From Oopsacas minuta (taxonomy: Eukaryota; Animalia; Porifera): a DNA stretch of 25,988 nucleotides. Below, one piece after another: positions 1,861 to 25,988 of the stretch. The DNA lies in contig JAKMXF010000308.1 in the NCBI GenBank assembly GCA_024704765.1, positions 352,622 through 378,609 on the forward strand, given 5' to 3'. Position 1 is the first letter of the stretch. Each line of letters begins with the position of its first letter. The translations under genes were made by a program, and so were the position numbers. A model generated the notes under the pieces. It was not told where the DNA came from, ran no database searches, and saw only the letters and a list, made by a program, of their open reading frames with translations.

Positions 1861-1944
1861 TTTTATTATTACACTGGTTACTGTTTGATTGATTCTTTCC
1901 TAATTATGGAATTGTTTATTAGATAATAATTTGACGCGCATAAC

Positions 1945-1983
1945 CCGTGCCCTAGTTATTTTACCAGTCTGTCTACGTCACTG
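1945..1983 (+). mobile_element. Right terminus (TIR) of the hAT element carrying the 300-1860 transposase relic
   Basis: Ends GTCTACGTCACTG (reverse complement CAGTGACGTAGAC, a typical hAT CAGTGGCGTA-type TIR) about 120 bp after the transposase stop. Left TIR not found; the element is 5'-truncated. Confidence 0.6.
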
Positions 1984-2501
1984 CTGCAGTAGAATAGAGA
2001 GTAGGTCTAACCTCTTTATGCTCTCTAACACAGATGGCAACTATGATGCATCCTGTGGATTCCTGATATTTTAAAATGCAATACATGGATTGGAGTCTGG
2101 AGAAAACTACTTTAATTATAATTAAGAATTAACTTATATGATACAGTCTGAGTTCGTGTACTATTTTGGGTTGTTTCAATGTGGTAAAAGCATCTTTGTG
2201 GCTATTAAATTGTTTCCTGTTTCGTTTGAAACCAATTTTGTTTTGATTCGATTTTGCAATGCTGCTGCCATTAGTCTATAGATTGTACTGTATTTAATAC
2301 GAAGTTATTTCGTGTCCACGTATATCACTATAAGTTATAATAAAACTTACGGTGAGATTGCACAAAGTGATACTGAACTTATGTGCCATTGAAATGGCGA
2401 TACAAAGGCTGTTCAATAAATTTTGAAGAATCGAATATTATCCGATAGAAAAAGGTAATGTACAATTGACTCAGTAGAACTCAGACAAAGATATAAGTTT
2501 T

Positions 2502-2604
2502 CAGGCCCATTGGAAGGGGTCGGCCATGGCCGCCCCATTTTTCATTATCATAATGACACAACACTGGTGCCATACGCCGTAGGATAATCCTGACGAGAAC
2601 CCTG
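2502..2604. mobile_element. Solo hAT-like terminus relic
   Basis: Ends CATACGCCGTAGGATAATCCTGACGAGAACCCTG (reverse complement CAGGGTTCTCG...), GC-rich within AT-rich DNA. No matching opposite TIR or TSD found. Confidence 0.35.
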
Positions 2605-2715
2605 GTATAGTGATTACTAATAAATTAATAATGTAGAAATAAGGTGACTATTGTCCAGTGTTTGGGGTCAATTTTGGCTATGTTGAGGTTTTAGCTGTCC
2701 AGTTTCTTCACCTGA

Positions 2716-3822
2716 TAGGCCGGTCAATATGATGTATGACCCCAAAATAGTTTCAAGAAATTGTTTTATTGCATTTTTCGTAGTATCCTCTTTAGGGAAT
2801 AACATACCTACTGAAAGTTTAGCAGAATCGGATCCCAAGAAGTTGAAAATTTGTGGGGTCAGAACTTGGTTTCAAATAGGAATTACTGGTGGTGTAAATG
2901 TTGGCTATCGAATTCAATTACTTTCGATCAACTTTTTATGGTCATATTCGTGCTCATCATCAAATTTCCAGCCGTTTGTAAACATATTGACCATATTTGA
3001 GAGATGTTTCCCTAGCAAAGCAAAAGTTTTCCTCGGGAATGTGACAAAAGTGTTCGAACCGATATGTCCCGATTAAGCGGAGTTGACTGTACATAACTAG
3101 ACTCAGCTTGCCTAGCGGCGTCGAACAAGGTGTCACTCGATGAATTTCTAACAAAATTTGAGATTGGAATGTTGTCACATTCCTGAAGAAATTTTCTTTG
3201 CTAGGGAAAATTCCCTCAAATATGATAATGCATAAAACTGCACGAAATTTGATCCTGAGCACGAATATGGCCATGAACAGTTGATCGAAATCAATTGAAT
3301 ACGCTAGCCAACATTTACAACTAGGGCTGTACCGGATATCCGGTACTAATCCTGTCCGACCAGTTACAGGATATCCGGCCGGAACCAGATATGAAGCACT
3401 GTTACTATCTTATACGGATATAAAAGGTGAATGAATGCAATACATATTGATACTGCATCTATTGTGGAATCACGTAAATTCTTTGAAGCCTAACTAAATA
3501 TACAGAATCCTAGAATTTGTACATTCAATTAAGAAAAAGCAGAACATGTTCTTGATGTGACATTTGGCAAAATTTTTCGGAAGGATATTTAATCGGATTT
3601 CCAGATCTGGACGGAGAAGTGAATCTCTAATCCGGTATAGCCCCTTTCCAACACCGATGATTCCTATTGGACACCAAGTTTTGAACCCGAAATTTTAATT
3701 TCTGGTGATCCGATTTTGGTAACTTTTAGTATACAGAGGATACTACGGGAAAAACGCATTAAAACTATTCATTGCAATTATTTTGGGGTTGGCGCATTTT
3801 TATTCTTTTTTTGACTCGACTA
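2716..3822. mobile_element. Foldback-like long-inverted-repeat non-autonomous element
   Basis: Left arm ~2716-3047 aligns by eye (roughly 75-80%) to the reverse complement of 3172-3321 joined to 3653-3822, with a 124-bp spacer (3048-3171). Termini approximate; superfamily not assigned. Confidence 0.8.
3322..3644. mobile_element. hAT MITE inserted in the right arm of the foldback element
   Basis: TIRs TAGGGCTGTACCGGAT and reverse complement GGGGCTATACCGGAT. TSD TTTACAAC (3314-3321) and TTTCCAAC (3645-3652), 7/8. Clustered CCGG/ATATCCGG subterminal motifs. Foldback arm homology resumes after it. Confidence 0.85.
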
Positions 3823-4490
3823 TTAGTAAAACGCATGTTATTTACAGCATTTTCTGCGATCTATCTTAGATTGCTTCTCAACTTATAGTACGTTTACAAA
3901 TACATGTATTAATAATTATTACATTTACATAGCATACAGAAATACCGCCATAAACTAATTAAATAGTATGTCCAGTTTGTGTGTCCAGTTATTTTTAATG
4001 TTCTGTCCAGGAAAGTCCAGTTTTTTTCGAAAACTTGAGAATGTCCAGGTTTTGTTGAAAAACCTTTTGGTCACCCTGTGTAGAAATAGTACGTGCATTT
4101 TTTTATCAACCACTAACTACATAATATTAATAGAAAATAAGAACTAAAATTTTGACCAATCAAATAAGAAGCGAAGTGTCGTGTAATTAGGTCATGTAAC
4201 GAAATGTAGCTTTAGCGAAAATGAAATTAACGTCCGTTCGAAAACATAGATTTTTCGAACTGTAGGCATAACTTAAACAAAACTACCCATTTTAAGAGAA
4301 AGTCAATATATTATTCTTTCATTCGTTTAGCACAAGGTGTACAAATCTAGTGTCATCAATAATCAGACTTGAAAAGTCACTTTGGTGAAACTATGAAGAT
4401 TATTTTCGTCTAGATTTAGCTCCACCTAGACTTTGATTCGATAAGCATGTTATTACCTCAATATAGAGATAGTATAAAGGAATATTACTA

Positions 4491-5803: not shown

Positions 5804-6308
5804 ATTCTAACGAGTGACAAAATCGAAATTCTAACAAATAGGCAAGCATCTTCAAGTTATTGATGAATATTGGCAAAATGTATCATCCACGGTGGCTATT
5901 AGAATTCTGTAACTCGCGAACTTTATAATGCCACCTTTTGATATTCTTGTACAGCAACATCGTTAGATCTAATGGCATATATTTGTAACTGTAAACGTAT
6001 TTTACCCCATTACGAAGTTTCAAAATTGGAAGTTTTTTGACAAATTTGCTAAGTTAGTAATTAGATTAATTAGATAGACTGTGAGTAATGTCAATTATCA
6101 ATAATGCATTTATTCCACCATTTGTACCATTTAAGTATTATCGCAAAAATTAGGGTTCCCAAGGACAGACTTAACATATCTCCTGGTCCAAGTCTATCAA
6201 TCAGTACTATTGCCTCAGTGTATAGGGTGGATACTATACCTAGAGGGATAATAATTACATATTAGTTAAACTGTGCATGATACAAAAATATTATATACGC
6301 AAGTAAGA

Positions 6309-6398: not shown

Positions 6399-9300
6399 TT
6401 ACCAAAAGGGGCACCAGCCTATATAGCATTGGCATAGGTTTTCATGAGAAGTAGCCTGATAAATTAAAAGTTGAACTTGATCTTCTATGGACAGTCCACT
6501 TTTGCATGAAAAATCACAACCAGTAAGCTTATCTTTTATACGAGATATTATTGAAAGGGCCTTTTCATTAACCTCCATTTGAGGAAAATCTTCATTTTCT
6601 TCAATGATTGATGGCTGTGTAATCAAATTAGTGGGTCGCTTATGTAACAACGTAATATCATCTACAAGAAGGTTGCTTGTTTCCGCTTGTGGTCGAATAT
6701 TTTGTTTAACTTCTGTTTTATGTGGATTTGAATCTACCAATCTCCAAGAGAGGAGTGGGTCATATACAAATGCCTCTAATACGGCCATGACACTGTCTCT
6801 GTTATTTCTTAGTACATTCATAACATTAATGCACGTATGCTTGAACGTGCCATCAATGCCGGTAATTTCCATCGCTAATACTAGCATACGTGTTAGTCTA
6901 AAAGGTATCTTTTCAGGGAATTTTTCACGTATCATTGCGACTTCGAAACAGTCACCAAAGTCAATGTGAAGTACTCTCCCACTTACCCTATCGAGCATCA
7001 AATTTGACGGGTGTCTGTCCCCTAGACCCAAAATATAGCCAACCATAGACATAACTGAAAGTGAGCGTGTATAGTTAGTTCTTCTCGCGAACCAAACCTC
7101 TGAGCTAGGGCTCTTTAACCATAGAATGTTAGCTAGATCATGCCCATTTCTTTCTTCCAATGCTCTCTGAAATACCTCCACCTTCTGAATCAAAGGCAAA
7201 CAATCATAATCAGGTGAGTATTTTAGCATTAGTCGATGCTCGATATTTAGTACTATGTTTTTCTTCTCACGAAAATCTCGGATCAAAGCATGCATTGTAT
7301 CACAGTTTGGTACCCATCCGATAAGCCCAGAATTAGGAGAAAGAGGTATCACAGAATATCTCTGAATGAAGAGTTCTTTTTTAAATGTTTCCGAGTTGTT
7401 AATCAAAAGGGTATTCACTAATCCAAACAATTGCATTACCCGTGCATCTTGCCTCAAATCTTCATGACCTTTCAAAAGAAACTGAAATTCTTGTCCATTA
7501 CTCCCACGTAGACTTAATTTCCTAGGTCTTTGCTTAGATGGTATCACTTGAAGAGTTGGAGAGAATTCTTGAATATATATCATGGGCTGCCCTGGCTCAT
7601 AAGTACCGGGAACTGGTAGAACCATATCTCGCTGGTCGTTCAGCTTATGGGAAACACTTTTAAGCTCTAATGATACCAAAAGTGGCAGTTGTTTGCTGAT
7701 ACGCTTAAAAACATGAAAATATAACTCCCAAGCTTGAGTTAAATCTTTAATACATTGTGTACTTTGGTATTTTTTACACCAATCTTGCGCATCTGACAAG
7801 TCTCTCCCGTATGCTTGACTAAAAGACATCTCGTTTAACGTTTGTGGCCCTAATTCCAAAATAGAATGTAATGGTTCAAGTGTGTTCAACATACCCTGAA
7901 CATTTTTATCTGCAAAATACAATCGCGAGGCTTCCTCTAAACCTTCATGCCACAATTCATGCCATAGGATTGCAACTCGGATAAGTTCTTCAGACACGAG
8001 AAGTGCCTGTATGGTAAGTTCATGCCTTGTTTCAGAAATTACATTCAGAATTGCTTTAGCAGCATCAGAACGTGTTTTGACAACCGATTTAGAAGCAACC
8101 GTTATCGGATACACCAGGGCTTGAGGGTGTTGTTTTCCAACATCACATAATAGATTGTGAACCAATTTCTTTACATTATGGAATCGTGAATCAATTCTTG
8201 CTATTAATTGTGGGATAACATGTAACCAAGTGTCTATGGATACAGTTCTTATTCCTTGATCAAGTGTTTCAAAAATGTCATCATGTCCAGCATATTGAAA
8301 CCAAAGTGTAAGGAGACGTAATGAATCTTGTAGTGAATTAGCTGATAAAGATATTGACTTTAAAAAACCTTCTATTGAGTTCTTCACAAAGTCAATATGT
8401 GTAACGTTGATATCTGTAGTTCGAGCACCATATCTTTTATGAGTACTTGGAAGATCAATAAAGTTAGTTTGAGTTTGATCTTTTTGATTAGCTAGTTCAA
8501 AATTGTAGATAGCCCACGCATGCCAAGCTTTGTAAGAATTTGAATTGTATTCTGTGGCTGATTTGAGATATGTCAATATATTCTTAACAATTTGTGGATC
8601 GTTGAGAGTTTTATAGAGTTCCCAATTCCAAATGCCCAAACGTAAAAAGCATTTTGATAACAATTTTGGAAGTGAAGAAGAGGGTTCGAGTAGGGAATTT
8701 TCTTTCATTGATAGTATTTTTTTCGTGAAGGTAAGCATATGGTCTAAAATTTGAGTGCGTTTTTGATAGCTCTCATTAGATAATACTGTGTGCCATCTAA
8801 ATTTTATATAAGCATAATCAACATAAGGGTCAACCCAATCTGATTCAGGTTGATCAGCTCCCAAGAATTTTAATGTTTCCCTAGCACGAGTGAATCTTCC
8901 ACTCTTTCGACATAAGCTTGAGTATTTTATCCATGATCGTGTATCCTGGGTAGGTTTAACAATGAGTGACCTAACTAACAGTATTTTTTGCCAATCCTCA
9001 ACATTGTAATGACACCCTTGTAGCCTTTCCCACCATGTATTTATCAAATCTTTATATTTGTTTGCTGATGGTTCTGATTTAACATCAATGACTTCCTCTA
9101 GTTCTGACAGATTCTGTATAAATACCATTGCATTATAAGCACGAGTATAACTTTCACCAACAAGTACGCTTAATTCAGGATCCATCAAAACTCGTGCTTC
9201 TTTAATATAATTTCTCGCAACACAATAATCTTCCGAGTGAATTGAATATACTGCTCGAAAATATGCTCCATTTTGAGAATGAGCGGGGATACGATCTATA

Positions 9301-12300
9301 AATTCATTGAACTTTTCCCACTTATTAAGTCCCCAAGCAGCTGAGCAGGCAATTTGGGAAATAGTAACTTTCTCCAATTTATTCGCTTTATTCCAAGTAT
9401 CTAATGAACAATCGTAAAGTTCTTCCCATTCACCCAAAGCTTCCAGGCAACGCAGCTTACCAATTGTATCTTGCATGCTTTCTAATCCGCTATACTGGTG
9501 ATTTCTATATATTTCCAATGCTTTATCCCAACACTGGAGACTTTCGTACCATTTAGCATCTTCGAGAACACCGTACATTTCTCTAGAATGTTCAAGAACT
9601 CCTAAGGAAGCCTCTGGCACCTGTAATTTATTATTTAGATCAATTAGATTTTCGAGTAAATCTTTTGTACTTTTGTTTGGTTCAAATTCCTTCTCTTTAT
9701 ACCTTAAAGCCTTTGCATAAGCCCTCGAGTGGAAAGCGCTTTCACATAGAACCTTACTATCCAATGGAAGGGAAATTATCTCTAAATGTTCAGTAAATTC
9801 AAGTAGATTAAGAATCACTTGAATGATTTCCGGACTTTTGCTTACTTTGAGAGCCTTCTCAAGATTCGTGATAAGTTCATCCCTATGAAACTGTGGTAAG
9901 TTCGACCAACAAGAAATAAAGGTTGCGTTAAATAATTCCCGGGCAAGAATATTGTAACAGGTACATATTTGATGAAGTGCTCTGAGAGCTTTATCAGGTG
10001 TTTCTTGTACTAACTGCATACTAAGCCTTCTTAGCCATTCATTCCAAGCCTCAACATTCAAGTTATCCTTTGTGTCCCAAGCTTTACTAAGACTAAGGAT
10101 ATTCATATAGGAGCCCTTGACTCCTGGGGTACTTTTAGAATGGAGATAAGAATCGCTAACATGTTCGTTTACGGTAAGAGCATGTTGAAGAAATGTTACT
10201 TCTGTAGGAATATTTATAGAACAGGCCTGCTTGTTTTCGGTTAATTGGAAAATAAGATATTTATAGTCAGTGTTATATAATCCATGTTTCTCTAGAACTG
10301 TGTTAACCATGGGTATAAAGATTTCATAGCTACGACCAAGTTGAGGAATAATAGCAATTAAGACCTGAAATGCATCTATCTTTACTTCTTCACTATTTTC
10401 AATCGTCCTGGACAATGTATGTACAACAGGTGACACAAAATCATTGAAGTCAATACAAGAACTTAGAGATTTAATTGCTAGTAGAGCTTCTCTAATAACT
10501 GTTAAGGAACTATCTGGTCCTTCCAATAATTTGATGACGGGAGGTAAAAGCATGTGCAAGTAATCGTCTATATTCGCGCCACAAATTTGTAGAGCCCTCA
10601 ATAGTTCTATGGTATCCTGTTTACCATGAGAATTATCTTCTAAGAGAACACCCAACATTGGTTGGACTAATTGAGGAATATAATTTCGAAATTCTGATCC
10701 CAGAGTTGTTATTAGTTGTTTAATTAGTTCAATCAGAGCAGTTCGTTTCACTCCAGTATCCCAAGATTTATGGATAATTTCGAATATTTTGGGCATAAAG
10801 TCTTTGGCTTGAGGTCCTGCTATTGCTACAATCCTCTTGAGTTGCGAAAAAAGGGTGGTTTTTAATTTCGTGTCAGCATTAATCTCAATTACTGGTAGGA
10901 TTGTGGGTAAAATTAGTTTAACAAACTGGGGTGCTTTATCATCCAGGTACTCTAAAATCAAAGGGAGAGACATTGCTGCTTCTAAGTGGAATGCTGCAAG
11001 TGAGGTATCATTTAAAATCCTTAGGAGGCATCTAATTGCGACTTGAGGATAAAAATCCTCAAGTTGTTCACTTGATGTTGATACCCAAACTTCACTAGTA
11101 AAATTTCCGAGAACATTTTGTGGTATATCGAGATTTTCTGAGGTGATGTTTCCAGTACTATTCTGGTTTTGAACTTCTTGTTTGAGTTTGTGATGATAAG
11201 CAAGATATTTGTGTGGGTCTAATGCGCCAAGAAGACCAAGAACACGAATACTCTGGAGGCGAACAGTTGGAAGTAATTCGACCTTTAAAAAAGAGTAGAG
11301 TATATCCATCATTTGCGGACGTTGGAAGGAAGGCTCTAATACATATCGTGTGTGTTCAAGAAGCTCTCCAAGTGTCCAAAGCATCATGAGAGATTTGTCT
11401 GTAGAACTATTAGCTGAATCTTGAATATTATCTCTAAGTATAGGTATAATCCTAGTGGAATAATTTCTCATTTCGGATTGGCTAACTTTAGCTTGCATAG
11501 CGATTGCCAGTAATACACTCATAATGACTCCTACTGAAGTGTTAGGATCTTGCAGTTTAGGAATTAAAGTATCCAATATTGGTTCGAAATATGGTTTTAC
11601 AAGAATGGGTGTATGGGTAATCAAACAAGCAAGTAGCTGAGCACTTTGTTCTTGAAGTTGATCTGTATTCGTAAATCTAAGATCATCCAATAGCTGAACG
11701 AGAGTCTTACGTAATGATGGCAGTAGGTAAGCAGGGTTATATACGTTCAAGCGACCAAAAATCTCCAAAACCTCCAATCTAATCTCGAAATATTCATCTT
11801 GGAATGCAGCGAATAATTTTTGCAAGTTCTCAGCCTGAGCAAGGTGTCCATCGAACTTAGACGTAAGCGAACAGAATACACATAACCGAACACTGTAATC
11901 CTGGTCAGTAACACCGACTTTAAGTATCAAATTTAATATTGCAGAAACATTTTGAGTTGCTGCCTGTTGATTGGGTTGTTGGACAATTGTAGAAGCAGCA
12001 ATAGTAGGAGAAGGAATAGTCTGCTTTAGAAGATTGCAACATGTTATAATAGTTTGAGTACGCACACTCCTGTCACAATGATCCAGAAAGGTGTGGGCTA
12101 CCAATTTTAAATGAAATGATATGCCTATCAAATCTTCAAACTCAAATTCAGAAAGGGTTTTCAGAGAGAGTATAATTTCTTCCGAATTAGCTAAAAGAGG
12201 GGGAAATGATTGCAGATCCAAGAAAGAAGAACCTCTTTGAAGTCCAGGATGATGGATTGGTTTGTGAAGTAGAACAGAAAATATTTGGTGGAGTAAATGT

Positions 12301-13856
12301 TGTTGAATTATTTTCTTGAGCTTTGCATCAGTATCAGTAATTTCTTGGAGTACTAGAATTAATCCTTCGCTTAGTCTGATGTTCATATTCTCCAACTGTT
12401 CAATCAGACTCTTTTTGTAGGTTTCTAAACCCGTAAATCCAGATCTTAGAAGATAAGACATACATTTATAAACCGCAGGGTCAACTTCTCGCGATCTTTT
12501 AAGAGTATCACGAGGGAGTTTACCCCAAACAGCATCAACCGTACTCTGAAGAAAGGTTTTAGGAAGCTTAATTATATCTTGTTTTAAGGCAAGTATTAGA
12601 AGACCTAAATCATGAAATGCTTCTGATGCACGATCTTTATCATTCGTTAAAGAGATTAAATAATCTGTAGCTTGATGGATATAATTCAACAAAAAAGTCT
12701 GAGGATCAAAAAGAGCTAGCCAGGGTAATATATTTATAATGGCTGAGGATAGCTGAGGAGATTTACTAGACAGGTTGTTTATTACAACTGAACAAATTTT
12801 ATGATAGTGTTTGCCAATAAACGTTTTACACTTTTCTGAATACGGATGTGCCCTTTGCCTACATGTTTTAGAATCCAACTGAAGAGTCTCTAGAATTAAC
12901 CTATAACCATGTGTAGGTGGACAAAGATACTCATCACCAAGGAATTCATCAGAAACATTTTCAATTGAATAAAAGGGAGTAAAACTCTCAGGTAGAGTAG
13001 GGAGTGATGAAATACGCAGTAATTCATGTACAAGCAATAAAAAGCAATGCGTATGGTCATCTCGCAATATCTTATCTTTTTGACTCACATTTTCTAAATG
13101 ATTTTCCGCACTTTTATAAAGATTTCTCCATGGAGGTGAATTAGAGTCGATTTCCCTAGTTGCTGAGAGAGCAAGGCAAGCCTTGAGGGAAGCTATTGCT
13201 CCTTCTCTCATATACGGTTTATTATCGGAAATGCAAGAAAAGGCTAGATCATAAAAATCATCAATTTTATAATGGTAGTAACTTTGAGCATTAATGGCTA
13301 GTTCTTTAATTATAAGAAGAGACGCAACCCTCTTAATATCAATTTGACCTTTGGTTCCTAACCAATCAATAGCGGTAGACCAGAATTGACAACCAACAGT
13401 ACTTGCACCTCTAACTTCGTTTCTAGAAATATATCCAATTGCCCTTGATACAAGTAATGGCATGCCGTCCCCCTGAACCAATAAACCCAGGAATGAATTA
13501 CGAATTCTTGCATTGATTAGAGATTTTTGGCTGGGGCTCACGTCTAATCTTAGTAAGACGACTGCTGCATATACTCCGCCCCTCTTCTCATGAGAGTTCT
13601 GACTCGCTAGTAAATTGCCAAGTTCACGGAGTAGTGAAAATACGTCATCTTGTGTAAATTCCAAATAACGATTAGTCACATAATTAAGTAAACATCTTGC
13701 TGCCATTTTTTGCGTTTGCTCAACATCACTTGCTAGATTTTTCAGGTAAGGTTGCAAAATTGAACAGGAGTCAGCCTCCATTATTTCTATAGCAAAAGAA
13801 CAAAGTGTAAACTTACCGTATTTCCCTGAATAAGCGTCATGCAGCTTATTATTCAT
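6399..13856 (-). CDS. MTOR: Serine/threonine-protein kinase TOR (mTOR), uninterrupted 2485-aa ORF; likely true start Met26 at 13781
   Basis: N-terminal HEAT repeats; FAT ([28 protein letters not shown]); FRB ([25 protein letters not shown]...[16 protein letters not shown]); kinase [47 protein letters not shown]; FATC ending [18 protein letters not shown]. No stops or frameshifts. Confidence 0.98.
   Translation of the reverse strand: [2485 protein letters not shown]
6402..7600 (-). other. PIKK kinase domain, LST8-binding element and FATC of TOR (approximate)
   Basis: Catalytic Lys motif ([11 protein letters not shown]), catalytic loop DRHPSN, DFG, and C-terminal CYIGWCPFW all intact. Confidence 0.95.
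7690..7990 (-). other. FRB (FKBP12-rapamycin binding) domain
   Basis: Recognisable against human FRB. Ser1977 (codon 7926-7928) corresponds to human S2035; Phe2047 (7716-7718) corresponds to human Y2105. Confidence 0.93.
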
Positions 13857-13965: not shown

Positions 13966-14479
13966 TGGAAATTATTTGAAAATATTTCGGCTAACTTTGT
14001 CCTAAAGTATATTTTGTAACTTTTCAATATACTGGATTAGTTCATGCCCAATTAATAGCACATAACATGTCTTCTGTTTATTGTCAATTGCTTATATTAG
14101 CTATCAGAAAATCTTGTCTATCTGTAATTGGCATAATGGGTTATTTTATGGTTCTGGCTGTGTAATCAAATGGACAAAATAACCCGAATTCAACTGTATT
14201 TTCAATTTCGGGTGCTGCTACCCTCGGCTCTTTTTCAAGGAAATACGCTATTTGTGAAACCGATTACTTAATGTTATTTTTATACGGACTGTGAAAGGGT
14301 ATAAACCGGGAGAATTAGCAGCTCGAATAATGTGAAAAATGTAAGAAAATGCGGGAATCTGATAACCAGCTTGTAAATCATGTTAACAGTATACGTCGAG
14401 TTGTTTCGAGCAATTTCTATAACTTTCGTCTTCAGTTCGTTTACGGTTAAATTTAATATACACAAAGTAGAACTCTCTG

Positions 14480-14880
14480 TACCTGAAAGTTCGATTTTCA
14501 GTGCAGCCCTATAGGGAGATGCCCTAATGGAATGGACGATGTGCGACGTCCGTACGTCCGTACAACCGCGAGGCCGTGCGAAAATCTAGCAGTCAATTGA
14601 ACATGAACATTGACATACTGTACATTTGGGTCGGAGATTTGCACCTCGGACATGAATATTTTCTAAAGTGAATATTTCTCACCTTTTTTTGTATTTTTTC
14701 AGGACCAGGAGCGCAAAATCAGTCCGGGTCTGGTAGATTGTGGGATCTACACGGGGTCAGGCGTGCCCTCCTGAAAATAACAAATATACAAAACCCTGAG
14801 CTGTACTAGCATTTTATCGGATGGACATTTTCTGCATGTCGTACTTACACTGTACACAAAATCACACTCCTATGAGCCCC
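14480..14880. repeat. Possible Helentron/HINE-like interspersed repeat relic
   Basis: Hairpin CTGAAA-GTTCGAT-TTTCAG (14483-14501), palindrome CCCTATAGGG (14507-14516), and CGTCCGTACGTCCGTAC (14547-14563), resembling the GTCC-type microsatellite of DINE-1/HINE elements. No second copy in the window. Confidence 0.3.
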
Positions 14881-14914: not shown

Positions 14915-15173
14915 TAGTGACGTAACTTCTTTATGTGTGCCCCCGCTTAATCAGGTTGGAGGCCCCTTTTAAGCAAATCATATATTTCGAAATAATAAAT
15001 GATCTCAAAATAACTGAAAATCGAAATTTATTTGAATTGGTAAATTATTATAATTATTTTCTTCTAACCTTCAAGCTAGCATAGCCAAGGGGTAATGCCC
15101 ATAATGGCCCCCTCAGTGTTAGGCCCCCAGCGCGTGGGTGGTGTGGCGGGGGGGTTGGCTAGTTACGGCCCTG
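14915..15173. mobile_element. hAT MITE (259 bp)
   Basis: TIRs TAGTGACGTAACT and reverse complement CAGGGCCGTAACT (10/13). Flanks AATCGGTA and AATTGTTA (6/8). GC-rich GGCCCC subterminal motifs. Confidence 0.6.
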
Positions 15174-16309
15174 AATTGTTATGGCAATAATTTCATCTCA
15201 TTATGAGTTTTCATAAATGTCATGTATCCATAGTTATAAGTTAAATTGAATTGTTAAATAATAATCTTACTTCACAGTCCATACTATACTGATTACATCA
15301 TATCGAAATTAATATATTGTGGCCTATGTTATATAAGGCCTATTCACTAACTACATTTTCCTGTACCATGGATTAAAGGATGTCCACATATTTACATAGG
15401 TAGTTCTATTCGTTACGGTACAATCAAAATGGTACATTTTTACACGATTAATTGTAATACTAGTGCGCTTCGCTTGCTAGTCACTGCCGAAGCAGTGAAA
15501 TACTCAGTAATACGTATTTCGTGCTCTAGGCGAATTTTCGCGGATGTTTTAATTTTTATTATCAATGGCCCATCGAAAATCCATTTGATGACCTTCTCTG
15601 GTAATACTAGAGCTCTCATGTGGCTTAGGTTTAGCAATCTCGACCCCTTGTATTAAGAAATTTGGAAAATTTTCAATTTTAGTACAGTCATGATGACCTA
15701 GTAATTTCATAACGAGTTTGCAATTGTTAAGAGTTATGAAGTCAGGAAAATGGCATGTCATGGGTTCCCTGTGATTTAAATTCCAACCATAAATCATCTA
15801 TATTGGGGTGGCTAATAACGTGATTTTGAGAATCTAAAAAGGTGACAGTGACGTCATTATTTCGTCATACGTGTGAATTTTCGTCCAAGACTCGAACTTG
15901 TCCGATCCAGACCAAAAATCCCCTGTATGCCAAAATCATCCATGGGGGTCATCCAGATTCTTCAATCAATTCCGGACAGACGAGGAGATATATATATCTA
16001 TATATGTCACCGTCCAAATTGAGGAAGGTTATTCTTATATAATTTGCTACTTATGATATTATGGGTCAACTAAAATGCAAAATATTTGTGTAATCACTAA
16101 TCAACATACATACCAAAGTTACCTAGATGCTACTGGGGTGTTAGGCCCTTAGTAACACTTGTGCTATCACGCGACAGTTACTGCGCTATTTCTAACTAGT
16201 TACCGTAGATATGTATTGTACTTAGGGCATTCAAAATGTTCCCATCTTTGTTTAATATCTTCACACTACAACTACTTACTAATCAAATTTCTACATAAAA
16301 TTCGAAATA

Positions 16310-17638
16310 CTAGGGCGTTCAATAGGTCTTGCGGTGATATCATAGAATATGATACAAACACTATACGCACTAATTCACTATATTATTTATTCAAAGTAAT
16401 CCCCTCCTGCAGATACACAAATTTTAACCTTTCCACCCACTTGTAAACACATTTCTGTACTCTTCTTCGGGGATGGATTTCAAGTACTGGTACAGGCCCG
16501 TTCTGAGTGCTTGTAATGTGTTAAAATCTTTGCCTTGAAGGTATATTTTAAGCTTGGGAAATAGCCAAAATCACACGGAGCTAGGTCTAGTGAGTATGGT
16601 GGATGGGGAAGTAATTCTAACCCTTCTACATCCAAGAAATTTTTGCTAAGCTTAGCTGTATGGGAACTGGCGTTATCAATTAGAATCTTCATTCCTCGAG
16701 TTCCGGTTTTCGGGCGGTACTTTCTATATTTTTTATCAAATTTGGAAGCACGTCCTCTGTAAAGAAAGTAGCAGTAACAGCCTTGCCACTCTCACACGGT
16801 AATTACAAGACAATTCCATGACTACTGAAGGAGATGGTATACATAATCTTAGGTTTTCTGAAGTCGGGCCTAGGAATTTTCGCCGGTTGTTCGTCGCCCC
16901 TCACCCATGATCGCTTCTTATACTTGCATATGGTGTTGAATAGTACATCCACGTCTCGTCGCCAGTAATAATCTCTGTTAGGCGTCTAGAATCGCAGTTC
17001 TCATAAGTTTTCAAGAGTTTCTTGGCAATATTCAGTCATGCCAACCTTTGATTCTCACTGAGCTTATGCGGGACCCATTTCCCACAAATCGATCGGTAGC
17101 CAAGCTCAGTCGTCAGAATTGTATGAATAGCTCCCGATGAAATCTCCATACTTTGTTTTAACTGATTGACAGTAATGCACTTGTCTTCCATGACCATACT
17201 TTCAATAAGTGCGATATTCTCTGAAGTGGTGGCGGATACCGGTCTTCCAGATCGAGGCAAATCTGTGACATCAGCATCACCAGATCTAAAACGGGTAGTC
17301 CATCGCTCTACAGTAGATCTGGAAGGGCAATCCACGCACAATATCTCCTGTAACTCGCTGAAGATCTGTACGGGCTGGATCTTGAGTATTGCGCGAAACT
17401 CTATGTAAGCTCGCCATTTGAGGTTGAAATTATCATCCTTTGAAGCCATAAATTCAACAGTGGGTATAAATTGACTACACGTAACTATCTCAAAAATTCA
17501 TAATTAGTATTGAATAAGCTTGAAACTTTCAGTATATGGAGTTTAACTATATGCGCTTGTAATATATGAAAGTTAAATATATTACTTGACTAATTCCTAA
17601 GATATATCATGATCCGCAAGACTTATTGAACGCCCTGA
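16310..17638 (-). mobile_element. Mariner element 1, full length (1329 bp)
   Basis: 25-bp TIRs CTAGGGCGTTCAATAGGTCTTGCGG (16310-16334) and reverse complement TCAGGGCGTTCAATAAGTCTTGCGG (17614-17638), 22/25. TA TSD at 16308-16309 and 17639-17640. Confidence 0.93.
16387..17449 (-). pseudogene. Mariner (DD34D) transposase of element 1, inactivated by stops and frameshifts
   Basis: HTH region (SRSTVERWTTRFRSG..DLPRSGRP), WVPHKL, stop at 17036, IITGDETW (16949-16966), IDNASSH...HPPYSLDLAPCDF (34 residues between Asps), C-terminal CVSAGGDYFE* ending 16387. Confidence 0.93.
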
Positions 17639-18460
17639 TACTCCCTCTCTATGTCTATGCATAGTTGTAGCCTTTCAACCCACTACGAAAATGTGGTTTT
17701 ATACTCGTCTCTGTCCACTGAATTGAGGTAGTGGTAAACCCCGTTTTCCAGCTCTTGTCGAGTATGAAATAGCCGTCCTCCGAGATGGTTTTTCAGCTCA
17801 GGAAATAGCCAAAAATCACAATGTGATAGATCTGGGAATACGGAGGATGTACCATCGTTTCAAACCCGATATCCTTAATAACTTCGCTAACATATTTTGA
17901 AACATGAGGTCTAGCATTATCGTGGAGAAGTTTGATTCCTCGAGTTCCTGTACGCGGAGGTCGTGTTTAATAGACTTTCTCGACTTCTCTCACGCATTTA
18001 TCTGCGTAAATTTCTCCATTGAGTCGTTCATCTTAGGCACAGGGATTTGAGCCACTGGCCCATACGCATCAAAAATATGCTGTAGAGAACCTCATCATCT
18101 CGGAAGGCCGAACGTGCCTTTTCGGGGGGTTAAGAACCTTTTGGGAGCCACGATTTCTTTGGCAGTTACGTAGAGGTTTAGAAAATTTAATACAAGTTTT
18201 GTCACTAGTAACGATTTCATATAACCTTGAGAATCACAATCTCTATATTCTTTAATCAATTTTTCGCGCATGAAACCTTCTCCTTTTGCAATTGAAAGTA
18301 GGACAGATATAGATATATAATGGCCTGAGTGAATTGCTCAACAGCCTTAAATAGGTAATCGATAGGATTATTTGGATATACTATGCATTTCATGTAATCG
18401 AGTAGAGTCTGGCTGATATAAACAATTGATGGGAACATCTTGGATGCCCAAAGTACTTAA

Positions 18461-18488
18461 TATTGTTTGTCCATCTGGACAAACAATA
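18461..18488. repeat. Perfect 13-bp inverted repeat with 2-nt loop
   Basis: TATTGTTTGTCCA-TC-TGGACAAACAATA read directly. Confidence 0.95.
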
Positions 18489-18489
18489 A

Positions 18490-18865
18490 CTATATTTTCA
18501 TTTCGTCAACTAAAGAAATTTTCGAAGCAGAGCTTCAAAAGCTCAATTTACAGGTGGTCGGGAGAGATGAGAGAGATGGGATTATCGAGGTTACAGAGAT
18601 GACAATTGCATACGAACGATCGCAATTGGGGCAGACCAAGTTGCGCTATTCTGTGGAGGAGTTTGAGGGTGTAAAGGTCCTGTAAGTGAAAGGGGGTGAG
18701 TTCCGGGGGACTACACGGAGCAAGTTACGCGTAGTGGCTTAGGAAGACCTGTTGGATACGTTAGTGGCCGCACATCACGAGCTCAGTTATGTATGGAGGA
18801 CGAGACAGGATGTACGAGTATTTCATGAGTCACAACTATCACGTCCTTCGTGCAGTAATTGTGTG
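18490..18865 (+). pseudogene. N-terminal relic of a KRBA2/SCAND3-like (Ginger2-type) integrase with integrase zinc-binding region
   Basis: KEIFEAELQKL...KLRYSVEEFEGVKVL*VK...LRVVA*EDLLDTLVAAHHELS-[frameshift]-GGRDRMYEYF (18795-18812). This resembles the H-x3-GHGGRDRM signature of KRBA2/SCAND3-like integrases. Family call from recalled motifs only. Confidence 0.55.
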
Positions 18866-18867
18866 GA

Positions 18868-19410
18868 GAGGAAACTGAAGCAGAATGGAAATTGTTTCGG
18901 CAGGTAATTTGGAGGCAATTCAAGAATTGTTCTTTGCAGGATGTACTATCGAAATTACTCAATAGCGGAGACATTTCGATTGCATTTCCAAACTTATCAA
19001 ATTTAGCTCAATAGTAGATGCTTTACTAGTAACAACAGCCATTGTTGAACGTACATTTAGCTATGAAACTAATAGCAACAAGACTTAGCAGCAGGATGGG
19101 CGAGGACACGTTGAACATAGGATACACATATGCATTGAAGGCCCTGATCACCTAACGAAAGATATGTTGGAGGAATTTGTTGATCATTATATAGGGCAAA
19201 AGAACCGTAGAATAGTAATGTGAGGTTCAGGCTTAAATTTTGTGTTTTGTTAATTAACACAGATTGTCCCAAAATATTCAGCTTGTAATTATTTTTTTTA
19301 TTACTTGCACAAATTATCTGCATAGTCTAAAAAAGGAAAGAATAGTTAGGGCTATATCGTTCTCCATAATGACAACTTCCCCCCAAAGTAAAATCCTGGA
19401 TTGAGCCCTG
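18868..19410 (+). mobile_element. 3' fragment of a hAT element (ZNF862-like transposase C-terminus plus right TIR)
   Basis: EETEAEWKLFRQ...AFPNLSNLA..VTTAIVERTFS-MKLIATRLSSRMGEDTL..ICIEGPD...DHY...RRIVM* (stop 19221-19223). Terminus TCCTGGATTGAGCCCTG (reverse complement CAGGGCTCAATCCAGGA) ends 19410. Left end missing. Confidence 0.85.
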
Positions 19411-19416
19411 TTGAGG

Positions 19417-19541
19417 CAGGGGTTCCATTTGCGTCTCATGCAATGTAAGACAGCTGTCGGAACACTTGCCGGTGCAAGTGGAAGTAGGTTAGATGCATTT
19501 CGAGGAGTGACAGGCACTCTACCGTATGCGAGAACAGATAG
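19417..19541 (+). pseudogene. Cys-rich C-terminal relic of the same KRBA2/SCAND3-like integrase
   Basis: With frameshifts: QGF..CVSCN..SCRNTCRCKWK*VRCISRSDRHSTVCENR*, matching the recalled QGF-C-C-C-C-C-SRCH-C-N tail of this family. Confidence 0.45.
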
Positions 19542-20305
19542 CGATGTGAAAACAGGATTTTTTCAAAAGCACCCAAATCATCTGGTCAATTACCCTAATA
19601 ATCAACTGGTCAACTAATTCACTGAAAATAATAGAGTTTCTATAAGTACATTTACTACATTACCTCCTACTTTGTCATGATTTTATAGTATATTCTGTAT
19701 GTAAACAGGGGCGTCAAAACCTGGTATTTCATGGGGGATTGAATGATATGAATACATGAATAATAACATTCAATTTGGTAATCGAGATAGTCTAAATTAG
19801 AGCTTTGGCAATCTCCCAAACTTCCTTTCACAGTGTTAAGTATTTATAGACATTTGTAATTTGTTAAAATATAAACTGTAGTGTGTTCATTGCTTATGTA
19901 CTAACAGGGCTGGATTACCGCACATGCGGAATGTGCGATCGCATCAGGGCCCCCAAACTAGTGAATATTTACCTAATCGCAGACCCGTGCAGGGTTTAGG
20001 TAATCTTTTAGATGTTTTAGTTTACTTTCATTGTCCACTTTAATTATTAGCTAATTGCTCATAATGGAATTGTGTTTCTTTTTTTGTATTCTTCAATTCA
20101 TAAGAACAATTCCTTGTTTTTAAGGCAGGAGATCAATTTGTCAACAATGAACTCTATGAATTAACTAAGGTGAAATTGTGAAAACATATTATAGTTGTTT
20201 ATTCATAACAAATCATCATTTCCTACTACATATGAGACCATTACAAATTATTTGTATATTTTGATACTTTCCTTAATAAGTTGTCTGAGCTATATTTTTG
20301 ATTCG

Positions 20306-22670
20306 ATGTCTGCCTACAAACACAAAGTGGGGCGCAGAAACGAGATGCTGCTGCTTCCACAGAGCGTTATATATCAAAGCTGCCAAAACTTGACAACTTC
20401 TTCGCACCAACACAACCGCACTACAGCCCCAGGATGGGACTATACAACCAACACAATCTAATAATGATCTTGGACAATTGCAGCAGGTAGATGAGGAGCT
20501 TAATTTTTCTGCTGGAGAAGACAGTTCACCTCCTCTCGTAATTTCTCAATTGTCTATACATTTGAAAGATCCGTCAACTTGGCGTGAATCGCTAAATTCT
20601 GCTCCAGAAATGACAGACAAGCTAATTCGACTAGGCCCTGCTGCTGCGCACAACCGCTCAACGAGTTATCCGGCATCGAAGAGGGTATACAATGATGGTG
20701 AGTCCAGATATTTTCAGAACAAAATGCTCATTGTTGAATATGCAAATGGCGAATTGGGCAAGCGTGAATGGCTCTGCTACTCACCGTTGTCGGGTAATGT
20801 ATACTGCTTCCAATGCACTATTATGTTGACTACATCGAAAGAATCCAACAATTCCTTCGTACAAGGCTTCATTGACTGGAGACACTTCGACCGAATGTTT
20901 ATTGGTCACAGGTTCTAAAGAGAGTATTGCTGTAGTAAAATTCCTTGGATCCAATGGATTGGCTTTCCGCGGAACCGATGAGAGATTCAATAGTATTACC
21001 TCAGGCAACTATATTAACACCCTAAAGCTTCTTGCAAAGTTCGATGCATTCATTGCTGGTCACATCGCCAAATACGCGGACAAAGGGCGCGGGAGTGTAT
21101 CATATTTATCTTCCACTATTGCTGATGAGTCCATCGCTGTGATCGCAGAGAAAATAACTGATACGATCGTAGCTGAATTAAAAAAGGCAAAATATTACTC
21201 CATCAGTGTTGACTCAAGCCCAGATATCAGTCATGTAGACCAGCTTGTGGTCGTGATCCGTTATATTCACCCCCATCGACATGAACCTGTCGAACGCTTT
21301 CTTACCTTCATCCCATTTTCTCACACACTGGGCAGTCACTTGCAAATGTAACACTCGAATTACTTCATAGACTAAGAATTGATCTTGGAGGCATGAGGAG
21401 ACATGTTACGATAACGCTGCAAATATGTCTAGCAAGTATAACGGAATGTAAAAGAAAATTCTTGAACATGCCCCTCTTGCAATTTATCTTCCATGCTCAC
21501 CATACTCTCTAAATTTGGTAGGATAGGCAGCAGTTTCATCTGTCGATAGAGCGACGATTTTTTTCAGTTTCATACAAAACGTGTATACTTTTTCACCGCA
21601 TCCACTCACCGATGGAAAGTATTGACCGATCACTTTGGAGATAAACTAGTACCAAAGAATCTCGCTGATACGCGATGGTCAGTGCACGCTCAGGCGATAA
21701 GCGCTTTGAAAGAAGGTTATGATCAGCTGGACGTGGCATTGCAGGAAATTGCAAACGACTTGCAACAAAAGCCATCTACTCGACATGAAGCTGAAAATCT
21801 GTCTGCTACACTGTCCATCTGGGATGTCCCACTTCTTACAGAATTGTGGAATCAAATACTGCATCGAATCAACAGCGTCAACAAATGCCTTCAAGATGCT
21901 TCATTAGACCTTAGTGAAACATATCTCCTAAATTCATTGGTTGGATACTTCAAGTCATTGAGGGAACGCTCCACTGCGATTCTGTTAGATGCAAATAATA
22001 TTTCGCAAAAGGAAAGAAAAGATCCTTCCCGAGGGAGCTGTAAACATCGAGGGCAACATTCAACCAGCAAAATTGATTTATTCAGGATCAATGTATTTCT
22101 ACCAATTATAGACCTCCTCATTGTGGAACTGATTCGTCGTACAGAGGTCTACAAGGATGTCTACTCATTGTTTGGCTTTCTGATTAATTTATGCGCGACC
22201 GCCCCAAGAGAAGAAGTTGTTGAGAAGGTTCAACATTTGATATCCAAATATCCTGAAGACCTCAAAGACATCCATGAAATTATTGAGGAGGTCATACATT
22301 ATCGTATTCTCATGTCAGTTGTGCCTAGGGAAGAGCTGAGGATAAAGTGCACTTCTAGGAATCTCGGTGATGATAATCGTATAAGCTTCGGCGGTGTATA
22401 TCTCTATTTGTGCAACCATAGCATCGACAGCGTATTTCCCAATGTCACCATAGCATTGCGAATTTGTTTGACTATCATGTGCGCGGTAGCGACTGATGAA
22501 CGATGTTTTAACTACATGAAACATCTAAAAAATGTACTACGCACATCAATGTCAGAGGATCGATTCACTGATCTAGCTATGATTACGATTGAGCGGGAGC
22601 TATTGGAAGAAACCGACGACAAAGAAATTATCTCTAAATTTGTGGATCAAAAATTCGCAAAAATCTATGA
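20306..22670 (+). pseudogene. hAT transposase (ZMYM1-like: TTF-type zinc finger, DUF4371, dimerisation domain), frameshifted
   Basis: MSAYKHK..GAQKR..LPKLDNFF; REWLCYSPLSGNVYCFQC; LAFRG..SGNY..LLAKFD; YYSISVDSSPD; YDNAANMS; CxxH degraded to CSPY; ADTRWS; FPNVTIALRICLTI..ATDERCFN..KNVLRTSMSEDR. The ORF-track hits 20478, 20872 and 21622 are pieces of it. Confidence 0.93.
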
Positions 22671-22671
22671 A

Positions 22672-22760
22672 TCTATATTATTAAATCTGCATTTTGTCTG
22701 TTTGTCTGTCTGTTTGTTTGTTTGTCCGTTGTCAAGGAAAGGCTCGAACGGAAGGTAACG
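22672..22760 (+). repeat. Helitron-like 5' terminal fragment with (TGTY)n microsatellite inside the hAT 3' end
   Basis: A|TCTATATTATTAAATCTGCATTTTGTCTGTTTGTCTGTCTGTTTGTTTGTTTGTCCG resembles the TC-start plus GTCT/GTTT microsatellite of non-autonomous Helitrons. No 3' CTRR found. Confidence 0.45.
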
Positions 22761-24544
22761 CACAGGGCCCGCAATATGCTTAATCCGGCCCTGTGTATTA
22801 CTAGTGTGGTTAGTAATCAGCAGCCATGAAACAAAGGGAAAATTACTTTTTAATAAGCTTTGTTGTTAGTAGTAAAGTATTTCTATACATGTGAGGTGCC
22901 AATTAACAACTAGATAATATGAGGATATAACTCCAGCAGGCTTCAACCAATGACTGGATGTGTGAGGTTTCTGTTGAAAAGCTTTCCAGCTGGCAACAAC
23001 ATTATAATATGAAAATAACTATAAACAACCAATGATGGGGAAGATAATACCCTCAAAAAGATAATCCCTATCGTAGTTGGTTTATAATTATTTTCTAATA
23101 AGTATCGAGAATACCCATCCGGGGTGTAAACTATTGTACATTATATCCATCCTAAATTGGCAGAATGTTCTAATAAATGCGAAAATAATTAAATACTCAC
23201 TCACAATTATAGGGGGGATTATTCCCCTTTGCCTAATTCATGGGGGGATGAGTGCCCCCATCCCCCTCACTTCCGACGCCCCTGTATGTATAATTAGATA
23301 TTAATCATATTAAACACTACATATACTTTTATCAAGTCAATTGTGACATTTATTGGTAGTATGAATCTAGATACAACATACTTTTTTAGTGGATATTTCA
23401 TCATTTTTAGCAGGCTAGAAATCATATCTTTGAAATTATGAAATCTTGTTTTTTAGTAAACCATAATATTTAATCCATTATTTTGTATAAGAATAACCTT
23501 ACACAATTTGGTGGATACTCAATTTGGGCGGTAGCATATATAAATATATATATATTGATACACATACATGTATATAGATAATTGCGCTTTACAGTATAGA
23601 TCGATATTTTACTATTCACACAAGCTCTATCTACAAAAATTTCACAACGAAATGGCGTCATCTTTTTTATTACTAAACAAAATTTCTTGACCAAATTTCT
23701 GCAGTTTAGAAACTTCGTCAATAGATAATCCATAATTTATACTACAAAATTCACACAAGGGGATCTAGAGAATTTACCATACAAAATATAACAAATTTAT
23801 CATGATAAAGTTCGAGCGACCTTCAGAGATAGTAGTGACGATGGATGGCATATTTTTTGCCAATAAACACCCATAACTTGATAACTTTCAATGTTATGGC
23901 CGAATTATCTGACACATATATATTTAGTATATACCCTGACCTCCCATTTCCTGCTAATAAATTTGATGTGATATCTGAGAAGATTATGACGTCTAGGAAA
24001 TGCCCATATATGGTATTATTGATGTCTGCACAATATTCTTCGGAGATATCATATCATACTGTATTTTCAAGGTAAGGAAAGTCGGGTATTCACTATATCT
24101 CAGTAGAATGATTGGCCCTAACAATTGAAGTTTTAAGGTATTAGCGAATATAGGCAAAATGTGACATCCATGGTTACTACTATAAACCTGGAACGCGGCA
24201 ACTTTACAATGACAAATTTTTTATAATTTGTATGGAAAAATCATTAGGACCCGTGATGTGAATTTCGTACTGGAAATTTATGGATTATCCTTATGTGAAG
24301 TTCCTAACTTGGCAACATTTTGGTTAAGGAATTTGTCTAGTAAGCAAACAGATGACGTCATTTCGTTTTGAAATTTTTTGTAGATAGAGGTTGTGCGTAC
24401 TGTAAATATCAATAATACACTTAATCAGACCAAAGTGTACCATTTTGATGGTACCGTAACGAGTAGAATTCAATATGTAAATATATGGACTTCCTTTAAT
24501 CCATGGTACCGGAAAATACAGTTGGTGAACTGGCCTTATATAAC

Positions 24545-25029
24545 CTAGTGTTGGTCAGAAAAGACCACCCGGAATATCCACCTGGAAAAAAACAGGAAAA
24601 TCTTCTGACGATAATCACCATGTGTGACTTATTTCATGGCACATTTTGAGAGAATGATTTTCTAAAGAGATTTTACTTTTTTATTACCTCTTGTTGTTGA
24701 AATTTCGGACTATAACTCTTCTATACTGGGTTCCTAATGTGACAGAGGTTTGTAGAATATCAACTTAATGAACTGACATGTTTGTTTAGATAAGATATTG
24801 TGAAAGAGAATATCCCTAATAACTAATCAATATTCATTTCGTTTCAAGCATTTCATGAATTGAATTTAGATAGTGAAGAAATCGCATCCTAAATTTACAG
24901 AAACATAATAATTATATGTAACCTAATTTTTTACCTAATCAGCAGAAAATGCAGAAAAGACCAGAAAAGCCGGGTTTTTCCCACCTGTCTCGGTCTATTC
25001 TAGAAAAGGGTGGTTGTATCCGAACACTG
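24545..25029. mobile_element. hAT MITE (485 bp) inserted in the tip of the right arm of element A
   Basis: Perfect 8-bp TSD TATATAAC (24537-24544 and 25030-25037). Termini CTAGTGTTGG and reverse complement CAGTGTTCGG. CAGAAAAG(A/C)CC subterminal motifs at both ends. Arm A homology resumes after the TSD (GTAGGTTACA). Confidence 0.8.
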
Positions 25030-25244
25030 TATATAACGTAGGTTACAGTTGTTTACAATAAATAATAACACGTGGTGATAATAAATATATACGGCCTGGC
25101 AGCAACTGGGCCAGGGATTCGTAACCCGATGGAACATATTTCTTGGTATCGATATTACAGAAACCTATCGAGTTTGTACTCCATAATTGTACAACAACAA
25201 ATGACCAACCATTATGTGCTAAAAATTTCAGGAATTTATCAAAA

Positions 25245-25852
25245 CTAGCGCGCATCCTTGCTATGTCGCTAGGGGATAGCTTAGTGCCTCATGGTGGCTT
25301 GAGTATTGAACAGCTAATTTTCTTACTACTCTTGGGCGCAACGCGACGGTATCTACTATGAAATAGCAGAAATTTTGATTATCCATGGTCCATCGAAATT
25401 CTATATAATAGCCGACAGCAATAATATTAGAGGTGATAGGTAGCTTTTTGGTTTTTTAATCTTGGTATTTTGTGCTTCGAGCATTATGAAATTCTGAAAA
25501 ATATCGAAATTCGGTGAATTTTGATTATTTAGTAAAAAGTCTTGATGTAATAATCCAATTATAAGTTAGTATTTAGCCCAAATTATGATGTCAGGACATT
25601 TTACACATTGAGGGTTCCTTGAGATTAAATCTTCAAGCCTCAATCAAGTATATTGGCTAAGCCGTGGCTAAATAATGTGATATTACGAGAGTACAAAAAG
25701 GTGACCATTACGTCATAATTTCGTCATAGGTATGAATTTTCGTCCAAGACTTAAATTAGTCTGAGCCAGCCCAAAATACCCCTGTGTGCAAATATCAGCC
25801 ATGGGGGTCTTTCAGTTTCTTTAATCAATTCGAACATACAAACATATATATA
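25245..25852 (-). mobile_element. Helitron-like element B, copy 2
   Basis: Starts (plus strand) A|CTAGCGCGCATCCTTGCTATGTC, like A|CTAGTGCGCTTCGCTTGCTAGTC of copy 1. Shared blocks include TTATC(A/C)ATGG(C/T)CCATCGAAA, GAATTTTCGTCCAAGACT and CCATGGGGGTC. Ends in a (TA)n tract. Confidence 0.68.
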
Positions 25853-25988
25853 CAGTGTGTTCGGAAATTATTGGGACTGATTATAAATGTATTCTACTAT
25901 GAATTCATGACTCGTAGAGATTTCTCGTTTTAACACTAAGTTAAAATACATATAGTTGAAGAAAAACTAGCATTATTATCACATTCAA
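25853..25988. mobile_element. Probable left end of a TA-targeting (Tc1/mariner-like) element inserted in the (TA)n of B copy 2
   Basis: TA|CAGTGTGTTCGGAAATTATTGGGAC starts exactly where B homology stops. The other end lies outside the window. Confidence 0.35.

Follow-up and report, generated by a model that had tools for sequence, protein, structure and literature searches.

How many separate insertions are recorded in a dense cluster of transposons, and can the order of their arrival be recovered from the broken ends? These questions are raised by a stretch of 25,988 nucleotides from the sponge Oopsacas minuta (contig JAKMXF010000308.1, positions 352,622 to 378,609; G000:C308:352622-378609 in our numbering), hereafter the window, whose positions serve as coordinates throughout and whose G+C content is about 31-42%. 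A first-pass annotation had described positions 15318-25047 as about 9.7 kb of transposons nested within one another, lying about 1.5 kb upstream of an essential gene. Both statements are borne out: the interval divides completely into elements and target-site duplications, and it begins some 1.47 kb upstream of the TOR start codon. Judged from its sequence, the nest is very probably five levels deep and the product of eight separate insertions at one spot. The five to six levels first proposed are thus reduced to five, as the sixth, a Helitron-like fragment, was inherited by the family of the element that carries it.

The nesting scheme is as follows. The foldback element A contains F, a hAT-type miniature inverted-repeat transposable element (MITE), and B, a Helitron. 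B contains C, and C contains both mariner 2, which itself contains mariner 1, and the hAT MITE D, which contains the hAT element E. The sizes are 1096 bp for A, 485 bp for F, 605 bp for B, 1701 bp for C, 911 bp for mariner 2, 1329 bp for mariner 1, 682 bp for D and 2889 bp for E. Together with 32 nt of target-site duplications they add up to 9730 nt, which is exactly 25047-15318+1, with zero bases left over. Element boundaries, duplications, uninterrupted paralogs and the order of ages were all established from the window and from searches of the organism's own genome that covered 61 Mb in 365 contigs. The in silico excision and comparison with empty sites that the first-pass annotation had called for gave paralogs aligning in a single piece across the joins tested. 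The pieces are listed below in map order (TIR, terminal inverted repeat).

15318-15459, no strand: A, outer part of the left arm; the terminus starts TGTGGCC, the piece pairs with 24413-24548 at 83%, and paralog termini lie at about 15319.
15460-16004, minus strand: B, 3' part; CTAG end at 15460, subterminal GCGAAGC mini-hairpin and 7-bp stem, flanking A at 15459.
16005-16215, plus strand: C, left end; TIR of about 55 nt, TATA at 16001-16004, 32 genome matches at 81-93%.
16216-16309, minus strand: mariner 2, left piece; TA at 16214-16215, TIR pair 16218-16259 / 18415-18456.
16310-17638, minus strand: mariner 1, 1329 bp, with a frameshifted transposase; TA at 16308-9 and 17639-40.
17641-18457, minus strand: mariner 2, right piece; TA at 18458-9, about 425 bp deleted internally at 18289/18290.
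18458-19705, plus strand: C, middle; zinc-finger relic at about 18743-18904, deletion point 18862/18864, hAT-dimerisation-like relic at about 18864-19220.
19706-19904, no strand: D (hAT MITE), left part; the family breaks at 19705/6 and 19904/5, and 19698-19705 is the duplication TATGTAAA.
19905-22793, plus strand: E (hAT, 2889 bp, near full length); frame interrupted, duplications TGTACTAA / TGTATTAC.
22663-22745, plus strand: Helitron-like 5'-terminal fragment in E; (TTTG/TCTG)n tract, 495 candidate matches.
22794-23284, no strand: D, right part; the first 8 nt are the E duplication, and the TIR CAGGGGCGTC stands at both D ends.
23285-23536, plus strand: C, right end, with the right TIR; the first 8 nt are the D duplication TATGTATA, TATA at 23537-23540.
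23537-23600, minus strand: B, 5' part; rest of the (TA)n tract and a conserved terminal segment of about 45 nt, TC end at 23600.
23601-24544, no strand: A, inner left arm, loop (centre about 24006) and right arm; self-palindrome, 89 genome matches.
24545-25029, no strand: F, hAT-type MITE, 485 bp; family matches 24547-25029 at 77-88%.
25030-25047, no strand: A, right tip; 8 nt of the F duplication and 10 nt of A, paralog termini at about 25046.

The outermost host is A. A self-BLAST of the window recovered its inverted arms (15324-15459 versus 24548-24413) at 83% identity with an E value of 1e-34, and the self-palindrome 23600-24413 at 71% with an E value of 5e-90. Once the left arm is joined, it is colinear with the reverse complement of the right arm, so that the colinearity test proposed for the foldback is passed. 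The contiguous part of A has its 89 genome matches at about 70% identity. Eight A paralogs cross the 15459|23601 join in a single piece when B and F are removed in silico, and those with longer arms also cross the site of F in a single piece. The termini of the longer-armed paralogs map to about 15319 and 25046, essentially the limits first given, and the size of 1096 bp agrees with the earlier estimate of about 1.1 kb. The inverted repeat of A carries on through the F site, and F is flanked by a perfect 8/8 duplication, TATATAAC, at 24537-44 and 25030-37. The earlier proposal that a hAT MITE splits the tip of A's right arm is thereby confirmed. No target-site duplication was recognisable for A itself. 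A resembles foldback or long-inverted-repeat elements in being about 1.1 kb long, non-coding, multi-copy and made almost entirely of inverted arms; it differs in that it is assigned to no superfamily, shows no recognisable duplication and has paralogs that mostly lack the outer 85 nt or so. Most of the paralogs form a younger subfamily without these outer ends of the arms, which are present in the window copy. Among the A-family copies L002-L012, most lie about 5% from their own consensus and a few loci share the outer ends of the window copy. Two related structures were seen downstream of TOR: a second foldback-type structure at 2739-3789, whose palindrome is at 2893-3319 and whose outer arms are at 2739-2908 and 3637-3789, and, at 5851-5966, a lone piece of 116 bp like A's arm.

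Where does the left arm of A resume after it breaks at 15459? The first-pass annotation had placed the TC end of the inserted Helitron at 23578 and the resumption of A at 23579, with about 3 extra nucleotides. The break at 15459, the CTAG end at 15460 and the A|T insertion site all stand, but the other end was 22 nt off and the arm resumes at 23601. When 12 other B copies are aligned (B2 from this window and 11 from other loci), the tail past the (TA)n tract is conserved for about 22 nt beyond 23578 and ends TATAGA, then T. Homology to the A family, which is independent of the B alignment, begins at 23600/23601. The arm alignment scores 408 with the join 15459|23601 and 388 with the earlier one; the revised join needs no gap and has a single 1-nt indel 6 nt beyond, whereas the earlier join needs gaps of 3 nt and 20 nt. 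An end at 23578 was therefore rejected, and B was assigned to 15460-23600 because the conserved tail, the start of A-family homology and the gap-free join all agree.

With these limits, B reads on the minus strand from 5'-TC at 23600-23599 to CTAG-3' at 15463-15460, and most of the aligned paralogs share both ends. It sits between A (15459) and T (23601) without a target-site duplication. Near its 3' end lie a 7-bp stem and the GCGAAGC mini-hairpin, 21 and 7 nt before the end, respectively; the paralogs keep the 3' stem with differing sequence, and taken alone these short folds have no significant z-scores. The 605 bp of B hold no long reading frame, and hence B is by its termini and structure a non-autonomous Helitron. 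It is like canonical non-autonomous Helitrons in the 5'-TC and CTAG-3' termini (a CTRR pattern), the subterminal hairpins, the A|T insertion without duplication and the high copy number (672 candidate matches in the genome). It differs from canonical Helitrons in lacking a Rep/helicase gene, in carrying a (TA)n microsatellite about 45 nt from the 5' end and in the GCGAAGC motif contained in its 3' hairpin. A recurring A-B composite, suggested by BLAST matches in the loci L021 and L026, was rejected: the right-hand match is B's own conserved tail, and the left-hand match is a short AT-rich resemblance in the flank and not an A-B junction.

The second copy of the B family lies outside the nest:

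25245-25853, minus strand: B2; at 25854 another element, with hAT-like ends, interrupts its (TA)n tract.

An earlier comparison of about 590 bp for B with about 608 bp for this copy does not hold as a check on size, because B2 is cut at 25854 and the window ends before its tail; the two lengths are not like for like. Insertions in or beside the TA-rich tail are found in 4 of the 13 aligned B copies. The copy in the nest was entered by C, B2 by the hAT-like-ended element that runs from 25854 (window 25854-25988), the copy at L015 by a MITE of about 100 bp, and the copy at L025 by a mini-element, about 50 bp long, that consists of two C-type TIRs.

Element C accounts for the interruption of B's tail. 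Its TIR pair was found near 16005 and 23536 in the window self-BLAST, its ends read TGTCA...ACA and the TIRs measure about 55 nt. Paralogs of C run straight from 16217 to 18465 and straight from about 19700 to about 23283. The sole further break in them is at 18862/18864, where longer copies carry an extra 0.86-3.7 kb; these longer copies derive from one another by nested deletions. The window copy is therefore an internally deleted, non-autonomous copy of 1701 bp. A 4-bp duplication can be read in all three complete C copies (CGTA, TATA and TATA), with some room left for a 2-bp TA reading. The family breakpoints and the TATA/TATA duplication uphold the earlier claim that C, at 16005-23536, splits the (TA)n tract of B. 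A near-perfect palindrome of 28 nt (18461-18488), partly kept in the paralogs, lies just inside C beside the mariner 2 site.

What kind of element is C? Pfam searches of paralog frames gave Integrase_H2C2 with an E value of 0.002, below the gathering score, in one frame (L042:818-1240, minus strand), and Dimer_Tnp_hAT with E values of 0.001-0.02 in four frames, at the same profile positions and all from the start of C's second block. The short relic frames of the window's own copy matched nothing in Pfam, the other internal frames of C copies matched nothing in Pfam or PDB, and an integrase DDE core was not found in any C copy fetched. The internal region of the copy at L042 (contig C41) also holds an array, L042:270-702, of tandem units of about 27 nt that gives a peptide-like repeat in all frames and contains N positions. 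By comparison of the paralogs, the arrangement of a zinc-finger relic followed by a hAT-like relic is common to the C copies examined and predates the arrival of C at this locus. The earlier reading of an integrase relic cut locally by a hAT is therefore not sustained: both relics are family-wide, and here an internal deletion at 18862/18864 brings them together.

The ends and the target of C point to Ginger2. Bao, Kapitonov and Jurka (2010, PMC2836005) describe Ginger2 elements as having TGTNR ends, TIRs 50-180 bp long, duplications of 4 bp and the target RTATAY. C is like Ginger2/TDD in its TGTNR-type termini, its TIRs of about 55 nt and the TATA duplication in an AT-rich target; the weak, below-gathering-score H2C2 zinc-finger relic in a paralog would be a further likeness. 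It differs in the hAT-dimerisation-like C-terminal relic, in the lack of a DDE core in the copies examined and in being seen only as non-autonomous copies. The RTATAY preference accounts for the position of C in B's (TA)n tract. Two routes to a hAT identity for C were rejected. The locus L084 (G000:C277:492800-498700) encodes a Hermes-like transposase, but this belongs to a separate hAT of 2.6 kb nested at about 1400-4026 in the C copy there; that hAT has TIRs starting CAGGCTTGGACC, an 8-bp duplication GTATGCAC/GTACGCAC, an empty site in the copy L085, and frames with matches to the Hermes transposase at E 1e-10 and, at E 5e-15, to the hAT dimerisation domain. Likewise, hAT catalytic motifs read by eye in frames of L028 were unsupported by Pfam, by a PDB search and by BLASTP against E.

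The order of the relics in C recalls the domain order of SCAND3/ZBED9 (window 18743-19220; L033:1599-1856, minus strand; L036:1602-1829, plus strand; L042:818-1240, minus strand). Llorens et al. (2012, PMC3575427) trace that architecture to separate contributions that were put together in the host. We consider it rather unlikely that the C family transposase had itself fused a Gypsy-like integrase with a hAT-type dimerisation C-terminus, as in SCAND3/ZBED9; if it had, a mobile element would have been the first to hold a fusion of this type. Both sub-threshold relics would be explained equally well by an old nested hAT fragment in the founder of the C family.

The two mariners lie in the left half of C. 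Mariner 2 spans 16216-18457, has TIRs of about 40 nt and lacks about 425 bp relative to its family (288 candidates at 82-88% identity). The family of mariner 1 has at least 326 candidate copies at 93-97% identity, with ends at 16308 and 17640. Pieces of mariner 1 match HTH_48, Transposase_1 and DDE_3 in Pfam, each just below the gathering score because the pieces are short, and the relic in mariner 2 is 46% identical to the DDE region of mariner 1 (E 3e-15). Both elements are flanked by TA/TA duplications, as in Tc1/mariner. The TA duplications and the breakpoints in own-genome searches agree with the earlier placement of mariner 1 in mariner 2 and of mariner 2 in C.

The right half of C received D, and D received E. 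The D duplication, TATGTAAA/TATGTATA, matches at 7 of 8 positions, and C paralogs are without one of its two copies; the E duplication, TGTACTAA/TGTATTAC, matches at 6 of 8. An intact D copy of 689 bp at C277:309334-310022 is uninterrupted across the E site, and E copies elsewhere are 86-94% identical, with ends at 19905 and 22793. In Pfam, E matches DUF4371 (E 2e-11) and Dimer_Tnp_hAT (PF05699; E 4e-5, above the gathering score). The TIRs of D, E and F start CAGGG or C(T)AGTG; these short CAGGG-/CAGTG-type TIRs and the 8-bp duplications are those of hAT elements and hAT-type MITEs. E is further like hAT elements in its DUF4371 and hAT dimerisation domain and differs in the interrupted frame of the window copy, whereas D and F have no coding capacity and TIRs unlike those of E. 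The breakpoints, duplications and intact D paralog substantiate the view that a hAT MITE here holds a near-full hAT.

Is the Helitron-like fragment in E a sixth level? Its presence at 22663-22745 stands. It is found, however, in all six other E copies that cover that stretch, and thus its acquisition predates the amplification of E; it is no local sixth level. In unrelated loci the fragment has a sharp shared start at a TC-type 5' end like that of B, followed by (TTTG/TCTG)n, after which the similarity runs on into a different element.

If the insertions occurred one into another, then each passenger should be younger than its host. Kimura two-parameter distances to the majority consensus of the paralogs are 0.33 for A, 0.20 for B, 0.18 for C, 0.076 for D, 0.020 for E and 0.073 for F. 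For the mariners, ages were taken from the BLAST pairwise identities of their families given above, 82-88% for mariner 2 and 93-97% for mariner 1. The distances fall from outside to inside, and inner elements older than their outer hosts, which would have spoken against the nest, were not seen. The observations support the order in which the outer elements are older and each passenger is younger than its host. The relative chronology first claimed, covering at least four superfamilies, thus stands in its order; three superfamilies at least are secure (Helitron, Tc1/mariner and hAT), the ends and target of C mark it as a fourth, Ginger2-like type, and A is an unclassified foldback.

Several points weigh against this reading. 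Distance to a consensus mixes insertion age with subfamily history, and each consensus was built from only 7-19 paralogs with partial alignments. The A paralogs used belong to the younger subfamily, which is missing some 85 nt at the outer ends of the arms and has a median distance of 0.05 to its own consensus, so that the value of 0.33 overstates the age of A. Neither E (6/8) nor D (7/8) has a perfect duplication; for C the length of the duplication is ambiguous within the TA tract, and the reading depends for the most part on a single paralog whose context is not rich in TA. Correctness of the assembly is supported only indirectly, through the sequence at the junctions. Finally, some hosts and passengers could have come together as composites.

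Under this last possibility, arrival of D with E, of mariner 2 with mariner 1, or of C with its passengers would keep the nesting order and reduce the number of separate insertions at this locus. Composite inheritance does occur here, in the Helitron-like fragment of E and the integrase/hAT-like arrangement of C. For the pairs in question it is nevertheless improbable: mariner 2 is present in none of about 10 C paralogs examined that cover its site, E is present in none of at least 10 D paralogs, the full-length mariner 1 copies among the matches listed end at TA sites of their own and not inside mariner 2 sequence, and the passengers are markedly younger than their hosts.

Could the locus instead be a selected or specialised transposon trap, similar to a cluster of PIWI-interacting RNAs or a protected sink, rather than a site of passive accumulation? 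The first-pass annotation had suggested a tolerated insertion sink. Next to an essential gene, 9.7 kb accommodate eight elements, which belong to at least four types and run in different orientations. TOR is a single uninterrupted, intronless frame of 2485 codons (6399-13856, minus strand), identified by its FAT, FRB, PI3/PI4-kinase, mTOR and FATC domains. The trap is nonetheless a reading to which we give very little weight on the sequence evidence. Repeats the size of MITEs take up the 1.46 kb that separates the nest from the TOR start codon as well, and nested insertions were readily seen in the few paralogous loci fetched; nesting hence looks like the norm of this genome, and the locus is probably not special. 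The gap holds high-copy short repeats at 13996-14198, 14494-14688, 14695-14831 and 14945-15116, and one repeat family there has about 400 candidate matches at 77-85%. An assembly artefact that mis-joined repeats into an apparent nest is extremely improbable, for although every component is multi-copy and the genome is in 365 contigs, the junctions lie exactly at element termini with the expected duplication (or A|T for the Helitron) and the split halves of the hosts rejoin colinearly, and a mis-join would not yield matched duplications at seven of the eight insertions.

In the history that we propose, eight separate insertions would have followed one another at this spot. A would have been the first, after which F would have entered A near its right tip and B would have entered A's left arm, between A and T and without duplicating its target. 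C, internally deleted and with TGT...ACA ends, would then have inserted into B's (TA)n tract with a TATA duplication. Mariner 2 would have entered C at a TA, and the young mariner 1 would have entered mariner 2, again at a TA; the hAT MITE D would have entered C and the hAT E would have entered D, with 8-bp duplications for both. The nest may have grown because later insertions fell harmlessly into dead transposon DNA upstream of an essential gene, and because AT-rich or (TA)n stretches inside the elements draw in transposases with a preference for TA or TATA. None of this implies a function for the nest.

Nested retrotransposons lie between maize genes, and nested elements occur in Drosophila heterochromatin. 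The nest upstream of TOR is like these in that insertions fell into earlier insertions, the split hosts can be rejoined in silico, and the nesting order gives a relative chronology that agrees with divergence. It differs in its members, which are DNA transposons (foldback, Helitron, Ginger2-like, mariner and hAT) and not long terminal repeat (LTR) retrotransposons; the dating for that reason relies on distance to a family consensus and not on LTR pairs. It differs also in its small scale of 9.7 kb. The nest adds one more case to the long-established nesting of transposons and reveals no new mechanism. Its value is that of a worked example, in which all 9.7 kb are assigned, each insertion has an empty-site control and the age order fits the nesting. 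The locus fixes the true termini of the B Helitron family and presents the (TA)n tract of this Helitron as a repeated target for transposons that prefer TA or TATA, and its reconstruction is useful for annotating the repeat families of this genome.

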